This document shows positions 3,229 through 64,000 of a DNA stretch of 64,000 bases, in pieces (the stretch's first letter is position 1; every line of letters starts with the position of its first letter). The translations under genes were made by a program, and so were the position numbers. The stretch is from the sequence record KT919973.1. The stretch is one strand, 5' to 3'. Below the pieces are notes generated by a model, which saw only the letters and a list, made by a program, of their open reading frames with translations, made no database searches and was not told where the DNA came from.

Positions 3229-5298
3229 ATGATTATTCATACCCCTGAAAGTAAAGTCCAAACATCTGGTAAGATGCGAACGGCTGGCTTTAATATGAAA
3301 GCAAGTGCAAAAGGCTTTCGTATTATTTCGACTACACTATACAAAGACCCTATTCTAGCTATTGTACGTGAATTGACATGTAACGGCTGGGATGCTCATC
3401 AAATGAACAAAAATATCGATAAAGCAATCGAAGTACACTTGCCGAATCAGTTTGAACCATGGTTTGCAGTGAAAGATTTCGGTTGTGGTATGAGCGATGA
3501 CGAGATCTTTGGCGTGTACACGACTGTTTTTGATTCGACGAAAGACGACTCGAACGACGTGATTGGTGCAATGGGTCTTGGTTCTAAGACACCGTTTAGC
3601 TATAACAACGGTCAATCGTTCACTGTTAAGTCAACAAAGAACGGTCTTAAAGCGGTTTACTCTGCTTATCTTGATAATGGCGAACCTGCAATCACTTGTA
3701 TGTCAGAGCCTGCACCAACTGATGAGCCTGATGGTGTTGAAGTAATCGTACCAGTACGTAAAGAAGACTTCAATCGCTTCAAAGAAGCTGCAAACAAAGT
3801 AATGCCGTACTTCAAAGCACCTGCTGTTGAGACGAATATCACTCTTTCTGAGCGTAATTTCACTCATATGGACGGTTACTTCACTGAAAACAAGAAGAAT
3901 TCATGGCGTTCTGGTGATGTTTACGCAGTAATGGGCAATGTTTGTTACCCACTAAGTGAATATCACATTCAAGATATTCATCTAGTTCGAAACTACTTCA
4001 AGAACTCTGATCTATACATTGAATTCCCGATTGGTGAACTCGATGTCAGTGCGTCTCGTGAAGAGCTTCACTATGATGACTATACGATTGACAATATCAA
4101 TAAGCGTGTGAATGAAATCAATTCTAAGTTTCTAGCTGAAGCACAGAAATGGGTTGATGATCAAAACTTTGATTATATCGGTGATGCATATCGCGCTTGT
4201 GACAATCGTTTCAATGACGTTGTGCTGAAGAAGCTGAAGTTTAATGACGAGCTTGTGGCGACTTATGCAAGTCGTATGCTTAAAGATTTCCCGATTATGG
4301 GTAAAACTGTACGTATGCGACCTGAGTGCAGCAATAAAGAAGGTGTTCAACGCAATACCCGTGCTGCGCGTCCGTACGACTTGGTCAACCCGCGTAATGA
4401 TTACTCTAAAAAACCGATTACGGTCATTGTTGACGATTTGAAGTCTGGTGGTGTTGCAATCACAAAAGAATATATTCGTCAAGAAAACGTGAGTATTTTC
4501 TATCATCATGACGATAAGCCGTCTACGACTGCACCGTTGGCATTCTTCAAAGAACGTCTTCGTGATTGTGAGTATCGCGTGTTGAAAACGTCTGATTTGA
4601 AAGCGAATTACACGCCTCAGAAGAAGAGCGTCAAGAAAAAACCAGTGTCAGCTACAATTCGTTTGTATGAAATGCGAATTAATGAAGACGGCGAGCGTAC
4701 AGTTAAAGCATCTGACGTTAAACGCGAAGTATTAAAGAGCGGTTCGTTTCATTACGTAAGTCTGTTCCGTGATTACATTGAGAAAGTACCAGAGTGTGGT
4801 CATGGTCTTGATTACCATCGTTCGTTGGGTATGATCGAGACGATTATGCGTATTAAAGGCATTGATGTTGTTTACATCGCTCGACGTCCTGAGTACGTTC
4901 ACATCAAAGGTAATGAAAATGCTGTAAATATCTTTGATATTAAGTTTAACAAGCGTGAATTGCGTAGTAAAATTGATTGGAAATCATACACAGTTGATAA
5001 CAATCTGTACGGGTATCGCAGTGCGCTTGTGATGACGTGGAATAATGATGCTGTTCGTAATCATTTCGGTTACGCTCGTTCTTATCACACGTGTAATCAG
5101 ACGATTGATCGACTGTGCGACCACTTCTCTGCTATTCGCGACGTTCGAACACAAGAGCAAGAAAAGCACTTAGAGAAGTTGAAAAAGATTCAAAATGAAT
5201 CGAAATATGAATTGCTATTCAAACTTGTTGGTTCTAACACGTGTGAAGAATCAACTACAAAACTAATTAAACTCTTGAGAGGAAAACGCAATGGTTAA
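3229..5298 (+). CDS. rIIA: RIIA protector from prophage-induced early lysis
   Basis: GHKL-type N-terminus (LYKDPILAIVRELTCNGWDAH, VKDFGCGMS, GAMGLGSKTPF); 689 aa; precedes rIIB. Confidence 0.95.
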   Translation: MIIHTPESKVQTSGKMRTAGFNMKASAKGFRIISTTLYKDPILAIVRELTCNGWDAHQMNKNIDKAIEVHLPNQFEPWFAVKDFGCGMSDDEIFGVYTTVFDSTKDDSNDVIGAMGLGSKTPFSYNNGQSFTVKSTKNGLKAVYSAYLDNGEPAITCMSEPAPTDEPDGVEVIVPVRKEDFNRFKEAANKVMPYFKAPAVETNITLSERNFTHMDGYFTENKKNSWRSGDVYAVMGNVCYPLSEYHIQDIHLVRNYFKNSDLYIEFPIGELDVSASREELHYDDYTIDNINKRVNEINSKFLAEAQKWVDDQNFDYIGDAYRACDNRFNDVVLKKLKFNDELVATYASRMLKDFPIMGKTVRMRPECSNKEGVQRNTRAARPYDLVNPRNDYSKKPITVIVDDLKSGGVAITKEYIRQENVSIFYHHDDKPSTTAPLAFFKERLRDCEYRVLKTSDLKANYTPQKKSVKKKPVSATIRLYEMRINEDGERTVKASDVKREVLKSGSFHYVSLFRDYIEKVPECGHGLDYHRSLGMIETIMRIKGIDVVYIARRPEYVHIKGNENAVNIFDIKFNKRELRSKIDWKSYTVDNNLYGYRSALVMTWNNDAVRNHFGYARSYHTCNQTIDRLCDHFSAIRDVRTQEQEKHLEKLKKIQNESKYELLFKLVGSNTCEESTTKLIKLLRGKRNG

Positions 5299-7942: not shown

Positions 7943-8612
7943 GAAACATATTCGAAAATACGATGAGCACGGGGTTGCTCAGTATAATATGCTGATGATA
8001 TTCGGTTTGATGATAGTAATCGCTCTATCAATAGCACTTACTGCGGCAAATATACTATTTTCATTCGAAATACAAAACCCTGACGCGAACATCACAACAC
8101 CGGGTGATTCGTTCTGGACAGTATGGATGGCAATGAGTACAATCGGTTTTGGTGACAAGTACCCTGTCACTACGGGTGGTCGATATGTCATCGGGTGTAT
8201 GTTTGTTGTTGGTACATCGTTACTTGGTTTGACTATTGGTATTATCAACTCATGGGTTGTGTCTAAGTTTGATAAAAGCATTCAGAATCGCGTGTTGAAG
8301 AGTCAGAACGATGCATTATTGCACAAACTAGACCGTCTTGAGACGCATTTAGGCATCGATCAAGAAGTTCGATTTGATAAAGACGCACATGGTATAGATA
8401 CAATAATTGACCAGTATTTTGACAGCAACGAGAAAGCCGATAGATTTGTTACACTTGGTCAAGATGATAGCGGTCGATATGTCGTAGCAATAAATCAGCT
8501 AATGGTCGAAACGCAACATACATCAATGAAGTGGCATACTTTCATCAATGAAAAAGATGCTGTTAAATTCTTTGAAGAAACTAGTGAATTATTTCACACG
8601 GAGCTATTATGA
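7929..8612 (+). CDS. Two-TM potassium channel (KcsA-like) with C-terminal coiled coil and extra domain
   Basis: TM1, pore helix GDSFWTVWMAM, filter STIGFGDKYP, TM2, then LKSQNDALLHKLDRLE. Confidence 0.9.
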   Translation: MKRFKKHIRKYDEHGVAQYNMLMIFGLMIVIALSIALTAANILFSFEIQNPDANITTPGDSFWTVWMAMSTIGFGDKYPVTTGGRYVIGCMFVVGTSLLGLTIGIINSWVVSKFDKSIQNRVLKSQNDALLHKLDRLETHLGIDQEVRFDKDAHGIDTIIDQYFDSNEKADRFVTLGQDDSGRYVVAINQLMVETQHTSMKWHTFINEKDAVKFFEETSELFHTELL

Positions 8613-20682: not shown

Positions 20683-21516
20683 ATTGGACTATCTATTATC
20701 ATCGCAGTATTCAGCGTCGTGCTAATGATAGACTCACACGAGCAAATCATGTCTAAAGAATACAGAAACTTTGTCTTGATATTCAATGCCATTTGCTGTA
20801 TAGTCAATCTAGCTAACATGATTGTGATTCACAAATACGGAGTAACACTATGAGCTTGACAATACTACTAATGACACTTCTATGCTGTGCAATACTCACT
20901 GGCATGAGTATCTTCAGCTTCATTAACAAACCTAGCTTCGTGAAACTAGTAATCACTGCTGTTCTAGGCTTTGTCTCATATGTTCTACTACACGTAACGG
21001 CAGGCGCAATATGAATCAAACTATCAAAGCAATATGCATAGACAATACTTCAACTCGTATCGATAAACCCGAACCACCAAGCGGCATTACTCTCGGCAAA
21101 GAATATGTCGTTCACATGTATAACGTAAACGAACATACAAACAAACCACCTATGATTCGTATTACTAATGACAACAACCAACGAGCAAGCTATGTCGCTG
21201 CACGATTTAATCTAACAGTAGGATAAACTCATGTTCGCACTATCAATCTTAATTCTGATTCTCACTACATATCTGTTTGTAACCGATAAATCAAAACGAA
21301 CAGTTCCATTCGTGGCTCTGCTAATAACAACTGCGTTTAACTGTATCATTCAGTATTACCTAATTGATATTCTATCATTGAGCTTTAGTCTGAAGTAACA
21401 TGCAAACATTAATCGATTTACTAAACGATATACCCATCGGCTACATTATGCTTGTTCTATGTGCTCTAGCAGCTATAGCCGGATGGTGCTTGAGCGATAT
21501 GTCAAACAATGACTAA
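20680..21516 (+). other. Operon of small membrane peptides (20680-20853, 20850-21014, 21231-21398, 21400-21516) plus soluble 21011-21226
   Basis: Manual translation: 57, 54, 55 and 38 aa, each with 1-2 hydrophobic segments; coupled junctions. Confidence 0.65.
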
Positions 21517-21547
21517 AAACGCTTAGAATCGCTCTCACAGCGTCTCA

Positions 21548-21594
21548 GAGCATGGTACATATAGTATTGTTTTTAATATATCGCACCATGCCTC
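21548..21594. other. AT-rich element in an inverted repeat (candidate DNA-unwinding element)
   Basis: GAG-CATGGT...ACCATG-C-CTC enclosing a stretch with only 3 G/C in 25 bp (21557-21581). Confidence 0.5.
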
Positions 21595-21607
21595 GTTTAA
21601 ATGCACA

Positions 21608-21716
21608 TGTGTATAAATCTGTGGATAATATGTGTATGAGATTGTGCATAAGTGTCTGAAATCTGTGTATAAAAACATGATTTAGCTGTGCATAAGTCTG
21701 TGGATAATGTGGATAA
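21608..21716. repeat. Array of eight co-oriented DnaA-box-like 9-mers in noncoding DNA (candidate origin)
   Basis: TGTGTATAA 21608, TGTGGATAA 21620, TGTGTATGA 21631, TGTGCATAA 21643, TGTGTATAA 21664, TGTGCATAA 21687, TGTGGATAA 21699, TGTGGATAA 21708; 7 match TTWTNCACA exactly on the minus strand. Confidence 0.9.
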
Positions 21717-21886
21717 CTTTTTAGTGAAAAATTGGTGAAAGTCTCATCGGCTCCTGTGTGGTACGCGGCAGTCTAAAACCTTACACCATTTGTAAAAATC
21801 TAATCCGCTTCGCATCTTTTTGCTTGACACTCAATGCCGTCCTGTGAGAGGATGAGAAGACAACTGAACACCTTGGGAGGGGTGAT

Positions 21887-22033
21887 ATGATAACATTAGC
21901 TTTGTTTTATATGAGTCGCGACATGCAATACAGTGAGCGACCAAGTGACTTGTACCTTGGTACATGTATTTTAGACTTTGCATTAATCGCCACGATGTTC
22001 TGTGGTGTAATGATGTTCACTGGTAATTGGTAA
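21887..22033 (+). CDS. 48-aa membrane peptide
   Basis: Strong GGGAGGGG RBS; hydrophobic C-terminal half; TAATG coupling to the next gene. Confidence 0.6.
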   Translation: MITLALFYMSRDMQYSERPSDLYLGTCILDFALIATMFCGVMMFTGNW

Positions 22034-23864: not shown

Positions 23865-23939
23865 AAAAGGGTTGCGCTATGCAGCCTTTTTTTGTATTAT
23901 AGCTTTATCGAAACGACAACGACTAGAGAGAATATTATG
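23865..23939 (+). promoter_or_regulatory. Terminator/promoter cassette (right flank), near-identical to 23049-23084
   Basis: One mismatch over about 36 bp; ATCGAAACG at +1 (23907). Confidence 0.9.
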
Positions 23940-59434: not shown

Positions 59435-60928
59435 ATGCTTAATCTTAATCAAAATATCGCAATCGCAACAGACAGCTACAAAGTTTCACACTGGTCTCAA
59501 TTCCCTCGTGGTTTAGAGTACAGTCAATATTACGTTGAAAGCCGGGGCGGCAAGTTCGACAAAATTATGATCGATGGTATGGCATACATGTGTCGTATTC
59601 TCGAAAAAGGTGTTGCAATGAACGATGTCAAGCGTGCGAAACGTCTGTTCAAAAAGCACTTCGGTTCTGAAGTCTTCAATGACAAGGGTTGGGAAATCAT
59701 CGTTAACGAACTGAACGGCAAACTGCCTATTAAGATTCGTGCGGTAAAAGAAGGTACTGTAGTACCAGTTAAGCACCCTATCTTGACGATTGAGAACACA
59801 GATCCACGTTTCGGTTGGCTACCTGGTTATCTTGAAACGTTTATCTTACGTGCGATTTGGTACCCGACAACTGTAGCAACGATCTCGTTCGAAGTGAAGA
59901 AAATCATTCGTGAATTCATGAAGAAAACGGTTGATGATGAACGCATTGCAGAACAAGAGCCGTTTAAACTTCACGACTTCGGTTCTCGTGGTGTGTCAAG
60001 TGGCGAATCAGCAGCTATTGGCGGCGCAGCTCACTTGAAAAACTTCTTGGGAACTGACAATGTAGAAGCACTTGTTGCAGTTGAAGAGCTTTACGCTGAA
60101 GATGTTGAAGACTTCATTGCGGGATTCTCTATCCCTGCACGTGAACATTCAACAACTACAATCTACAAAGAATTTGGCGAAGATCAAGCATTCTTGAACT
60201 CTATCGAGCAATGGGGCGCAGCTCTATACGCTTGTGTAATGGACAGCTACGACTACGAAGCAGCAATGAATCGTGTCTCAACTGGTCGTTTCAAAGAGCT
60301 AATCATCAGTAAAGGCGGTACGTTTGTTGCTCGTCCTGACTCTGGTGTACCAGTAGATGTAGTAATGAAAGGTCTTGAGATTCTTGGTAAGAACGTTGGT
60401 TACACAATCAACAGCAAGGGTTACAAAGTTCTACACCCTAGTTACCGTATCATTCAAGGCGACGGCGTGAACATCGAAGAAATTCGTCGAATTCTATCTT
60501 ACATGGAAAGTAAAGGTTGGTCGGCAGAAAACATTGCATTCGGTATGGGTGGTGGTTTGCTTCAGCAACTTGACCGTGATACTCAACGTTTTGCAATGAA
60601 AATGTCAGCGGCGATCATCAACGGCGAATACGTTAGTGTGTTCAAAATGCCGAAGACTGACCCAACAAAAGCATCAAAAGCAGGTTTCTTAGATTTGATT
60701 GCAGTCGATGCAGAAAATCCGAACCCAGCAGCTCGTGGTTACGTGACGTTCTCTACTGAAGATTACGACACTCGCGTACACCCGAAAAGCGTGATGCAGA
60801 CAATCTTCGAAGACGGTGTAACAGTTGCTGACTTCTCACTTGAAGAAGCTCGTAAACTGTCTGACGTGCAAGCTGATTTTATCAACGAAGGTGAATGGAA
60901 AATCGCCAAGAAGATTCGAACAGCGTAA
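59435..60928 (+). CDS. nadV: Nicotinamide phosphoribosyltransferase
   Basis: ATDSYKVSH, LHDFGSRG, SIPAREHS, VARPDSG, IIQGDG, AFGMGGGLLQ, RDTQRFAMK. Confidence 0.97.
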   Translation: MLNLNQNIAIATDSYKVSHWSQFPRGLEYSQYYVESRGGKFDKIMIDGMAYMCRILEKGVAMNDVKRAKRLFKKHFGSEVFNDKGWEIIVNELNGKLPIKIRAVKEGTVVPVKHPILTIENTDPRFGWLPGYLETFILRAIWYPTTVATISFEVKKIIREFMKKTVDDERIAEQEPFKLHDFGSRGVSSGESAAIGGAAHLKNFLGTDNVEALVAVEELYAEDVEDFIAGFSIPAREHSTTTIYKEFGEDQAFLNSIEQWGAALYACVMDSYDYEAAMNRVSTGRFKELIISKGGTFVARPDSGVPVDVVMKGLEILGKNVGYTINSKGYKVLHPSYRIIQGDGVNIEEIRRILSYMESKGWSAENIAFGMGGGLLQQLDRDTQRFAMKMSAAIINGEYVSVFKMPKTDPTKASKAGFLDLIAVDAENPNPAARGYVTFSTEDYDTRVHPKSVMQTIFEDGVTVADFSLEEARKLSDVQADFINEGEWKIAKKIRTA

Positions 60929-60930
60929 AA

Positions 60931-60946
60931 CGTGACATTGATCACT
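60931..60946. promoter_or_regulatory. Near-consensus CRP site
   Basis: CGTGA-CATTGA-TCACT flanked by A-tracts; centre about -62.5 from predicted +1 (61001). Confidence 0.55.
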
Positions 60947-60962
60947 AAAAATCGTAAATTTA

Positions 60963-61038
60963 GGGTTGCTTCGGCAACCCTTTTTTTGTATTATATCTAC
61001 ATCGAAACGGGATACGAAAACAAAGAGAGAACATTATG
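60963..61038 (+). promoter_or_regulatory. Terminator/promoter cassette
   Basis: GGGTTGC-TTCG-GCAACCC-T7; TTGCTT-17-TATTAT; ATCGAAACG at 61001. Confidence 0.9.
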
Positions 61039-62980: not shown

Positions 62981-63700
62981 ATGAAAAAATTAATCGCAAT
63001 CGTAGCACTAGCAGCATCAGTAGCAATGACTGGTTGTACTGACACGATTGACACTGCATCAACAGATCGTTTAGACGCGGCAAAACCCGTGCTATCTCAA
63101 ACTGAAAAAGACATGCTGAACGTGTTTGCTGCGCCGAGTTTTCTAAGTCGTTATGATAACGTGTACGTTGAAATCGTTAAGAATCGAGTACATTTCGGTC
63201 AAGATCCAACGCCTCGTTCAGATGCTGAAGTACCGTTCTGTGATGTCATTGACTCTGTAATTGCAGCAGAGCGTGAGCATGGTATGCTCGAACGAGACTA
63301 CACGTTGAGCAATCAATGGAAACTGAAGTACGGCATCCCGTTGGTTGAGCAATGTAATAAATCTGACCGCGCTCGAATTGCAATGCAAATCAAACTTGCG
63401 AAAGAAGAAGCCGAAGAAATCAAAGATCGCGTCGTAATCGAAGAACAAGAATTCAGCAAGAAAGAAATCAAAGCTGAAAAAGTAATTGAAGAGTCTGTAG
63501 TGATTAATGACGATGTGCTTCTATCACCTGAGCTTGTTCGTGACCTACGTGGTTCAGTTAAAGACTGTAATCGAGCTAAGGTGAAACTAATGAGCGTAGT
63601 CGATGCTGGTGAACCACTAACAACCAAGCACTATGATGAAGTCAAAGGTCTAGTTCTACAGTGTGAAATGCTCAAGTTAGAAGTTGAAATCAACAAATAA
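62981..63700 (+). CDS. Lipoprotein, paralog of 56757-57458
   Basis: Lipobox-like MTGC; shared Cys motifs. Confidence 0.8.
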   Translation: MKKLIAIVALAASVAMTGCTDTIDTASTDRLDAAKPVLSQTEKDMLNVFAAPSFLSRYDNVYVEIVKNRVHFGQDPTPRSDAEVPFCDVIDSVIAAEREHGMLERDYTLSNQWKLKYGIPLVEQCNKSDRARIAMQIKLAKEEAEEIKDRVVIEEQEFSKKEIKAEKVIEESVVINDDVLLSPELVRDLRGSVKDCNRAKVKLMSVVDAGEPLTTKHYDEVKGLVLQCEMLKLEVEINK

Positions 63701-63716
63701 TGTGACTTGAATCACA
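63701..63716. promoter_or_regulatory. Perfect CRP consensus site
   Basis: TGTGA-CTTGAA-TCACA; centre -81.5 from predicted +1 (63790). Confidence 0.65.
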
Positions 63717-63832
63717 AAAAGCCCCTTAATTGGGGCTTTTTTTCGTTTTAGTGGTTGCATGACAATCAATAAAACCCTATTATTACTACATCGAAACGAG
63801 ATTACATTTTAATAATTGGAGATTATATTATG
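63716..63832 (+). promoter_or_regulatory. Terminator GCCCC-TTAATT-GGGGC + early promoter cassette
   Basis: TTGCAT-17-TATTAT; ATCGAAACG at 63790. Confidence 0.9.
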
Positions 63833-64000
63833 TTTTACAAATTTACTAACGAAAAGAAAGTAGTCACTAAAACTCGCCCACTACGTGTAAATGATAAAGT
63901 TTCAATCGTTTTTGAATCAGGTCGTGTAGACGAAAATATGATTAAAGTTCATAGTGACTCAACTTTAAATTCAGCCACGTTTGTCTCGACAGATACAGGT
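63830..64000 (+). CDS. Hypothetical protein, truncated by the window end
   Basis: GGAG RBS; open to 64000. Confidence 0.6.
   Translation, partial: MFYKFTNEKKVVTKTRPLRVNDKVSIVFESGRVDENMIKVHSDSTLNSATFVSTDTG

Follow-up and report, generated by a model that had tools for sequence, protein, structure and literature searches.

A conserved CRP-type palindrome at the upstream edge of two early promoter cassettes of Vibrio phage phi-ST2

T4-type phages are usually described as having very strong, unregulated early promoters and regulatory factors of their own. A palindrome in Vibrio phage phi-ST2 that matches the core of the CRP binding site exactly raises the question of whether such a phage also uses a binding site for a host regulator. 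Phi-ST2 (KT919973.1, 250,485 bp) is a Schizotequatrovirus, a KVP40-like T4-type myovirus whose host is Vibrio alginolyticus, and the window analyzed here is the whole of bases 1-64000 of its genome. The original prediction had placed a perfect CRP core, TGTGA-CTTGAA-TCACA, between a stop codon and a terminator and upstream of a cassette promoter. We confirmed this observation (Table 1). The sequence and coordinates of the core were borne out, the stop codon ends at 63700 and the terminator stem begins at 63716, and the promoter belongs to a genuine, repeated type of early-promoter cassette. The predicted position of -81.5 was also reproduced, since the center of the palindrome (63708.5) lies 81.5 bp upstream of the predicted start at 63790; here and throughout, distances run from the motif center to a predicted, unmapped start. 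The interpretation placed on the observation was partly supported by the comparisons described below.

The palindromes and their promoter cassettes

The palindrome downstream of phiST2_0136 is referred to here as site 2. The extended terminator stem (63716-63741) starts with the final A of this palindrome. Relative to the next promoter, the T-run of the terminator spans about -51 to -41, the position for an UP element. Searches against Pfam and PHROGs assigned no function to the eight neighboring genes; phiST2_0136 matched no Pfam family and fell into a PHROG of unknown function, and only two relatives of it were found in IMG/VR. An Rfam match to the ribosomal S15 leader at 63803-63931 on the plus strand, which overlaps the 5' leader and the start of phiST2_0137, fell short of the gathering score of 39.5, at 28.4 bits (E = 0.0008), and is probably spurious.

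A sister palindrome, site 1, lies downstream of nadV, with its center at -62.5 from the equivalent predicted start at 61001. The site 1 core is imperfect in phi-ST2 and perfect in the relatives D483, D482, and nt-1. The two palindromes flank a block of ORFans next to nadV, and each stands at the upstream edge of an early cassette. A query of metagenomes with NadV found no relatives. The two sites had been proposed to lie two helical turns apart, on roughly the same face of the DNA. Their positions differ by 19 bp rather than 21, or about 1.8 helical turns, so this phasing is only approximate and the claim was unsupported; in two relatives, site 2 is centered at -52.5.

Table 1. Features of the site 1 and site 2 cassettes in the window
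Feature	Position	Strand	Remarks
nadV (nicotinamide phosphoribosyltransferase), gene upstream of site 1	59435-60928	+	
Site 1, CGTGA-CATTGA-TCACT (CGTGACATTGATCACT)	60931-60946	.	Two mismatches to core, both at outer positions
Site 1 terminator stem-loop	60962-60981	+	Contains -35 TTGCTT (60966-60971)
Site 1 cassette -10 hexamer, TATTAT	60989-60994	+	
phiST2_0136, gene upstream of site 2	62981-63700	+	239 aa; stop codon TAA (63698-63700) abuts palindrome
Site 2, TGTGA-CTTGAA-TCACA (TGTGACTTGAATCACA)	63701-63716	.	Exact match to CRP core
Intrinsic terminator after site 2	63716-63743	+	Stem AAAAAGCCCC / GGGGCTTTTT, loop TTAATT, then T-run
Site 2 cassette -35 hexamer, TTGCAT	63755-63760	+	17-bp spacer to -10
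Site 2 cassette -10 hexamer, TATTAT	63778-63783	+	Layout common to all cassettes
Predicted transcription start (A at 63790) and initial transcribed sequence ATCGAAACG	63790-63798	+	
phiST2_0137, gene downstream of site 2 cassette promoter	63830-64000	+	168 aa; ends at 64336, outside the window

The terminator-promoter modules of phi-ST2 correspond to the PeSL cassettes of phages RB49 and phi1. As in those phages, they are compact modules that run from a stop codon to the next ATG, combine a strong sigma-70-like early promoter with a G/C stem-loop terminator, are repeated around ORFans, and mark break-points of insertion, deletion, and replacement between related phages (PMC2839356). In our comparisons, gene content changes at the cassettes in KVP40, QD01, VS2, nt-1, D483, D482, and VH1_2019. 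The -35 hexamer lies within the stem at site 1 and downstream of the stem at site 2, and both arrangements are described as PeSL subclasses (PMC2839356). The promoter and its initial transcribed sequence recur in at least 10 intergenic regions of the window; TACATCGAAACG was matched 16 times, six of them exactly, against 8.6 expected matches, and starts with ATCGAAACG were located at 23907, 24726, 33152, 37820, 45980, 49634, 53498, 61001, and 63790. Besides the -35 and -10 hexamers, the early cassettes have in common a conserved stretch of first transcribed bases, (TAC)ATCGAAACGA, and a 5' leader with AGAGAGAACATTATG at its end; the pattern TAWTATWNCTNYATCGAAACR matched 107 stretches in IMG/VR, including contigs of 233,234, 235,229, and 222,006 bp.

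The phi-ST2 cassettes differ from the published PeSL elements in two respects. They share the conserved initial transcribed sequence, and two of them carry an additional conserved palindrome at the 5' edge, whereas the published elements have an A/T-rich upstream region and no transcription-factor operator (PMC2839356). Gene insertions bounded by cassettes were observed in relatives. In nt-1, a PagP-like lipid A acylation gene lies between the site 1 cassette and the phiST2_0133 orthologue, and in nt-1, CZ01, and D483, an extra small gene whose stop codon overlaps the palindrome lies between the phiST2_0136 orthologue and site 2.

Frequency of the motif and its conservation in related phages

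The original prediction held that two intergenic, phased sites within 3 kb made chance less likely. We evaluated the motif by mismatch counts and spacing controls. The exact core was expected 0.20 times per window and occurred at least once in 18 of 100 dinucleotide shuffles. Allowing one mismatch gave 8 matches in the window against 4.6 expected, and allowing two gave 49 against 55.8. The reduced motif GTGA-N6-TCAC occurred 7 times in the window (1.7 expected). Over the whole genome it occurred 16 times, where the half-site counts predict about 6, and this was the highest count among 21 spacings; in the window, the form with a 3-bp spacer, GTGA-N3-TCAC, was just as frequent. Fourteen of the 16 genomic copies lie within genes, leaving the sites at 60931 and 63701 as the only intergenic copies in 250 kb. 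The proposed check, enrichment of intergenic sites over shuffled sequence, was therefore negative, and the site cannot be called non-random on the phi-ST2 genome alone. The remaining copies in the window are at 4058, 8584, 41187, 45092, and 49857, that at 8584 (AGTGAATTATTTCACA) being about 10 nt upstream of an ATG at 8609; those beyond the window fall between genome positions 66157 and 245076, and the motif is over-represented in coding sequence.

It had further been suggested that the phage appears to recruit host global regulators, possibly sensing nutrient state. As a genome-wide claim, this was unsupported for CRP, given the absence of intergenic enrichment, and any nutrient response is putative. 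The motif was missing from the other promoters of the cassette type in T4-like phages: in the upstream 100 bp of 113 distinct IMG/VR promoters, GTGA-Nk-TCAC was found only at k = 6 and only at the slots of sites 1 and 2. A scan of IMG/VR for the motif together with the stem returned only KVP40, VH7D, and an unrelated coincidence. With two intergenic sites in 250 kb and none at these other promoters, a general CRP regulon of the phage was rejected. The suggestion had also drawn on DnaA boxes, which are probably the seven DnaA-box-like 9-mers (TTWTNCACA) that we located on the minus strand within 110 bp at 21608-21716, three of them perfect (TTATCCACA). They sit in a non-coding gap at about 21400-21890. 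Since such 9-mers are not enriched in the window as a whole (13 against 11.3 expected), the signal lies in their clustering, and the segment looks like an origin-like or DnaA-controlled region. The cluster is another host-factor motif present in the phi-ST2 genome.

The case that sites 1 and 2 represent more than chance rests instead on their conservation in relatives. Orthologous intergenic regions were compared across KVP40, VH7D, XZ1, R10Z, VS2, QD01, F86, D483, D482, nt-1, CZ01, VH1_2019, V07, V05, TCU-VP03, and 1.081.O (Table 2). At both slots, the number of distinct phages that keep the arms GTGA and TCAC is seven to ten. Their DNA identity goes as low as about 70%, and their lineages include Schizotequatrovirus, Mylasvirus nt-1 and CZ01, and the F86 and D483 lineages. 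The arms are near-invariant, and free variation is seen in the 6-bp spacer, at the outer positions, and in the linker that leads to the terminator. The spacers found were CTTGAA, CATAAG, CGCAAG, TGCGAA, ACTAAA, CACGAA, CACAAA, and CTTGAG at site 2 and CATTGA, CATAGA, CGTAGA, and TGAAAA at site 1. Invariant columns made up 15 of 16 in the core compared with 9 of 48 in the spacer, outer positions, linker, and promoter spacer (Fisher P = 1e-7, with columns and lineages that are not fully independent). In alignments from stop codon to start codon, the arms were conserved like the terminator stem, the -10 hexamer, the ATCGAAACG block, and the ribosome-binding region. Over the 16 copies from both slots, G7 was kept in all; T6, A8, T15, A17, and C18 in 15; C16 in 14; and G5 in 12, with the outer positions T4 and A19 kept in 7 and 10, respectively.

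Table 2. Site 1 and site 2 alleles in phi-ST2 and related phages
Slot	Phage(s)	Sequence	Remarks
Site 2	phi-ST2, VH7D, XZ1	TGTGACTTGAATCACA	
Site 2	R10Z	TATGACATAAGTCACA	
Site 2	KVP40	CATGACTTGAATCACA	
Site 2	VS2	TGTGATGCGAATCACA	
Site 2	QD01	TGTGACGCAAGTCACG	
Site 2	F86	CGTGAACTAAATCACA	
Site 2	nt-1	AGTGACACGAATCACA	
Site 2	CZ01	AGTGACACAAATCACA	
Site 2	D483	AGTGACTTGAGTCACA	
Site 2, promoter-less	VH1_2019	CATGACTTGAATAACA	Decayed
Site 2, promoter-less	V07, V05	CATGACTTGAATAAAA	Two bases lost
Site 2, promoter-less	TCU-VP03	CAGGTCTTGAAAAGAA	Decayed
Site 2, promoter-less	D482		Motif absent
Site 1	phi-ST2	CGTGACATTGATCACT	
Site 1	KVP40	TGTGACATTGATCACT	
Site 1	QD01, VS2	CGTGACATAGATCACT	
Site 1	D483, D482	TGTGACGTAGATCACA	
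Site 1	F86	TGTGACGTAGATCACG	
Site 1	nt-1	TGTGATGAAAATCACA	

Perfect cores with different spacers were found in the separate lineages of VS2, D483, and nt-1. VS2 and QD01 keep the motif even though a different terminator-promoter lies 3' of it, and the genes downstream of the motif differ among phages. The left arm of KVP40 and R10Z is ATGA, which lacks a key G. The motif was absent from both slots of 1.081.O, the most divergent relative, in which the cassettes are present, indicating that the motif is a feature of a sub-clade and not of the promoter type. Judged by these alignments, sites 1 and 2 are under purifying selection in the related phages.

The R10Z allele TATGACATAAGTCACA differs by four substitutions in 16 bp (63702-63711), with the flanking coding DNA almost unchanged. 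It is carried by phages 97-99% identical to phi-ST2 and was also seen in a public DNA run of an R10Z-like phage. This distribution suggests patch-wise replacement at the cassette, by gene conversion or recombination, rather than drift by point mutation.

Relation to RNA structure and to the downstream promoter

An inverted repeat that is transcribed could act in RNA rather than in DNA. The arms of the two phi-ST2 sites could form a stem of 4-5 bp with a 6-nt loop, with predicted folding energies of -3.8 and -2.8 kcal/mol. However, the pairing that a structured RNA preserves by compensatory change was not preserved in the palindrome. No genuine compensatory change occurred in 16 copies, and the covariation score was no better than that of shuffled alignments; the outer pair was unpaired in 9 of the 16 copies, and the second pair was broken in 4. 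In the same sequences, the neighboring terminator stem showed one compensatory change (C-G to U-A), one wobble change, and no broken pair. An Rfam scan returned no family at the gathering threshold. Two half-sites conserved in their sequence and lying 6 bp apart on a palindrome are instead the signature of a dimeric DNA-binding protein.

The position of the motif relative to the downstream promoter was compared across the relatives. At site 2, the center lies at -81.5 in phi-ST2, XZ1, and KVP40 and at -80.5 in five relatives; in VS2 and QD01, an intact site is centered at -52.5. At site 1, the center lies at -62.5 in six phages and at -60.5 in nt-1. When the phi-ST2 and D483 types are compared, 9 of the 16 nt in the site 1 linker have changed, and the distance is the same.

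Site 2 alleles from phages that have lost the promoter provided a further comparison. Four allele states were found. They arose when the downstream promoter and gene were deleted, at least twice independently, and all retain a terminator, which is then followed by a convergent radical-SAM gene; in each state the motif is gone or has decayed, and the decay took different forms. All 9 distinct promoter-bearing alleles had an intact TCAC, compared with none of the 4 promoter-less alleles (P = 0.0014, not corrected for phylogeny), a correlation that rests on about two independent deletion events. These data favor a function tied to the downstream promoter rather than to the terminator or to the end of the mRNA from upstream. 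In relatives, the motif is kept where the downstream promoter survives, and the phage therefore probably uses the CRP-type site.

Candidate binding proteins and alternative roles

The features of the palindrome were compared with those of CRP sites. Site 2 contains the 16-bp core TGTGA-N6-TCACA with its 6-bp spacer exactly, and the phage copies show the conservation profile of CRP sites, in which the inner GTGA/TCAC is kept more strongly than the outer T/A and the outer T/A more strongly than the spacer. The 5' flank, TAA or AAA, fits the 22-bp consensus (AAA...TTT), and the 3' flank is AAA, not TTT, which counts against CRP; CRP flank preferences are weak. ChIP-seq of Vibrio cholerae CRP recovers this palindrome, with bound sites that include TGTGATATGATTCACA and CATGACACAGGTCACA, and CRP of that species binds in vivo to sites of equal or poorer quality than the phage copies (PMC6050953). 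The second of these (CATGA...TCACA) resembles the KVP40 allele. A tblastn search of the phage genome with Escherichia coli CRP gave only noise. A phage-encoded CRP was rejected on this basis, and any binder of the CRP family would be that of the host.

The predicted centers of the sites also lie close to class I positions. Class I promoters have the CRP site near -61.5, -71.5, -82.5, or -92.5, on one face of the helix. The positions -61.5 and -82.5 are classical; activation is strongest at -71.5 and -82.5, and an UP element downstream of the site loosens the demands on spacing (PMC4132738). The phi-ST2 centers at -62.5 and -81.5 differ from the nearest classical position by no more than 1 bp. 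The phage cassettes resemble E. coli class I promoters, such as lac P1 (-61.5) and the synthetic CC(-71.5) and CC(-82.5), in having a canonical site upstream of a sigma-70 promoter whose hexamers are imperfect and an A/T-rich tract between the site and the -35 hexamer. They differ in that the promoter belongs to a lytic T4-type cassette, at which CRP dependence is putative, and that the -35 hexamer is either contained in a terminator hairpin or separated by one from the site. The phage sites are also out of helical register, with relatives at -80.5 or -52.5. A position of -52.5 is not a classical activating position for CRP. This geometry, which is not uniform among sites and relatives, would argue against CRP.

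A further difference from the E. coli promoters is that the phage has Alt, which in T4 disables the relevant determinant of the RNA polymerase alpha C-terminal domain (alpha-CTD). In phi-ST2, Alt is phiST2_0305 (genome 200334-201932), an AsiA-like anti-sigma factor is encoded by phiST2_0161 (genome 78533-78832), and no MotA is annotated. ADP-ribosylation of alpha Arg265 in T4 abolishes interactions with both CRP and UP elements (PMC2988021). By analogy, Alt of phi-ST2 may interfere with the alpha-CTD contact used by CRP, and the presence of Alt and AsiA counts against CRP action. KVP40-like phages have an AsiA orthologue and no recognizable MotA (PMC2988021, PMC1524935). The T4 MotA/AsiA middle promoters resemble the phi-ST2 cassettes in carrying an extra element beside the sigma-70 hexamers that is bound by an activator, the latter being putative in phi-ST2. 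However, the MotA box, (a/t)(a/t)(a/t)TGCTTtA, is non-palindromic and replaces the -35 hexamer at -30, whereas the phage motif is palindromic, lies 50-80 bp upstream, and leaves the -35 sequence TTGCNT in place. The motif thus does not have the layout of a MotA middle promoter, and with only two copies, it cannot be a general middle-mode signal.

Modification of the phage DNA was also considered. Genes resembling FolE, QueC, QueD, QueE, and QueF at genome positions 239663-246345 and 72544-73428 point to a 7-deazaguanine pathway of the preQ0 or archaeosine type, which, like Alt and AsiA without an annotated MotA, is relevant to the ways in which host transcription factors could work on the phage DNA. 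In the relative nt-1, only about 0.1-0.2% of G is 7-deazaguanine (PMC6884629). We therefore rejected heavy modification as a block to binding; at the level found in nt-1, modification should not prevent it.

These observations lead us to propose, tentatively and at slightly less than an even chance, that the site is a selectively maintained operator through which host cAMP-CRP modulates two early promoters. The palindrome, which stands at the upstream edge of a PeSL-type cassette, would be an operator to which a protein binds in double-stranded DNA. At high cAMP, the host cAMP-CRP dimer would bind sites 2 and 1 and would modulate, most probably activate, the sigma-70 promoters for phiST2_0137 and phiST2_0133-0136. 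Activation would proceed from upstream through the alpha-CTD in a class-I-like manner, and the terminator T-tract may act as an UP-like element. We infer CRP as the binder, activation as the effect, and host carbon status as the readout.

It is unlikely that the operator instead serves a different dimeric protein, of phage or host, whose specificity for GTGA-N6-TCAC coincides with that of CRP. The evidence from footprint, spacing, and promoter coupling applies equally to CRP and to other proteins and does not give the identity of the protein. Of the 16 copies, 13 have C at position 9 (GTGAC), where the E. coli CRP consensus has T; this would favor another binder, as would the intact -52.5 site of VS2 and QD01, which fits the class I rules poorly; the presence of AsiA without a recognizable MotA in KVP40-like phages (PMC2988021, PMC1524935) makes a phage-encoded activator conceivable. 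Nevertheless, none of the neighboring genes is consistently linked to the sites, the genes downstream vary from phage to phage, the neighboring proteins have no DNA-binding or other Pfam domain, and the genome holds just two intergenic sites. An exact match to a well-known host consensus is more economically read as a site for CRP. We consider it quite unlikely that CRP or another protein acts here as a repressor, or as a roadblock or insulator upstream of the terminator that shields the promoter from read-through. Such roles would be consistent with the constant placement of the site, abutting a stop codon and 5-16 nt upstream of the terminator hairpin, and with the documented repression of phage T1 promoters by CRP (PMC6737242). 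A roadblock would tolerate start distances varying from -52.5 to -81.5 and would be dispensable after promoter loss, which fits the pattern of decay. However, the start distance of site 1 is held exactly across a diverged linker, which argues for a function in register with the promoter, and the terminators are strong alone, their predicted folding energies being about -16 to -19 kcal/mol. We know of no precedent for CRP-assisted termination.

Two further readings dispense with a DNA-bound protein. A role in RNA is improbable; here the upstream mRNA would end in a small hairpin recognized by its sequence, for example as a stability or processing signal. In all of the phages, the repeat lies in a transcribed 3' untranslated region, immediately behind the stop codon and shortly ahead of the terminator, where its predicted fold would stand next to the terminator hairpin. 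Yet that fold is weak and, unlike the adjacent terminator stem, has no compensatory changes; no Rfam family reached threshold, and the motif decays where the terminator stays and the promoter is lost. That the motif has no function, being a chance variant inherited with the intergenic slots whose conservation reflects limited sampling and shared ancestry, is rather unlikely. The exact core in 18% of shuffled windows, the absence of enrichment at one or two mismatches, the equally frequent GTGA-N3-TCAC, the relatedness and non-independence of the compared sequences and columns, and the loss in 1.081.O all fit this account. They are countered by the contrast between invariant arms (15 of 16 columns, against 9 of 48) and linkers that differ at more than half of their positions, by the recurrence of the pattern at two separate slots, by independent decay after promoter loss, and by the perfect cores with different spacers in VS2, D483, and nt-1.

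Action of host CRP on phage promoters, as proposed here for sites 1 and 2, is already known in principle. In phage T1, cAMP-CRP directly represses promoters of pir, dam, and recE (PMC6737242). If CRP binds in phi-ST2, the two systems would share the action of host CRP on phage promoters and a link to host carbon status. They differ in that the T1 effect is repression tied to a lysis-lysogeny-like switch, whereas phi-ST2 is a strictly lytic T4-type myovirus in which CRP action is predicted from sequence at only two promoters. It is highly improbable that host cAMP-CRP goes as far as to stand in for the missing MotA, with the cassettes firing after remodeling of RNA polymerase and the ORFans near nadV being expressed conditionally upon carbon starvation.

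Any effect would be local, confined to two promoters and to genes without an assigned function. If the proposal is correct, a strictly lytic jumbo T4-like phage would read the metabolic state of its host at specific promoters, and a regulatory input would have been added to the mobile PeSL cassettes that shuffle ORFans. This would be relevant to candidates for phage therapy in aquaculture, the performance of which may depend on the physiology of the host.
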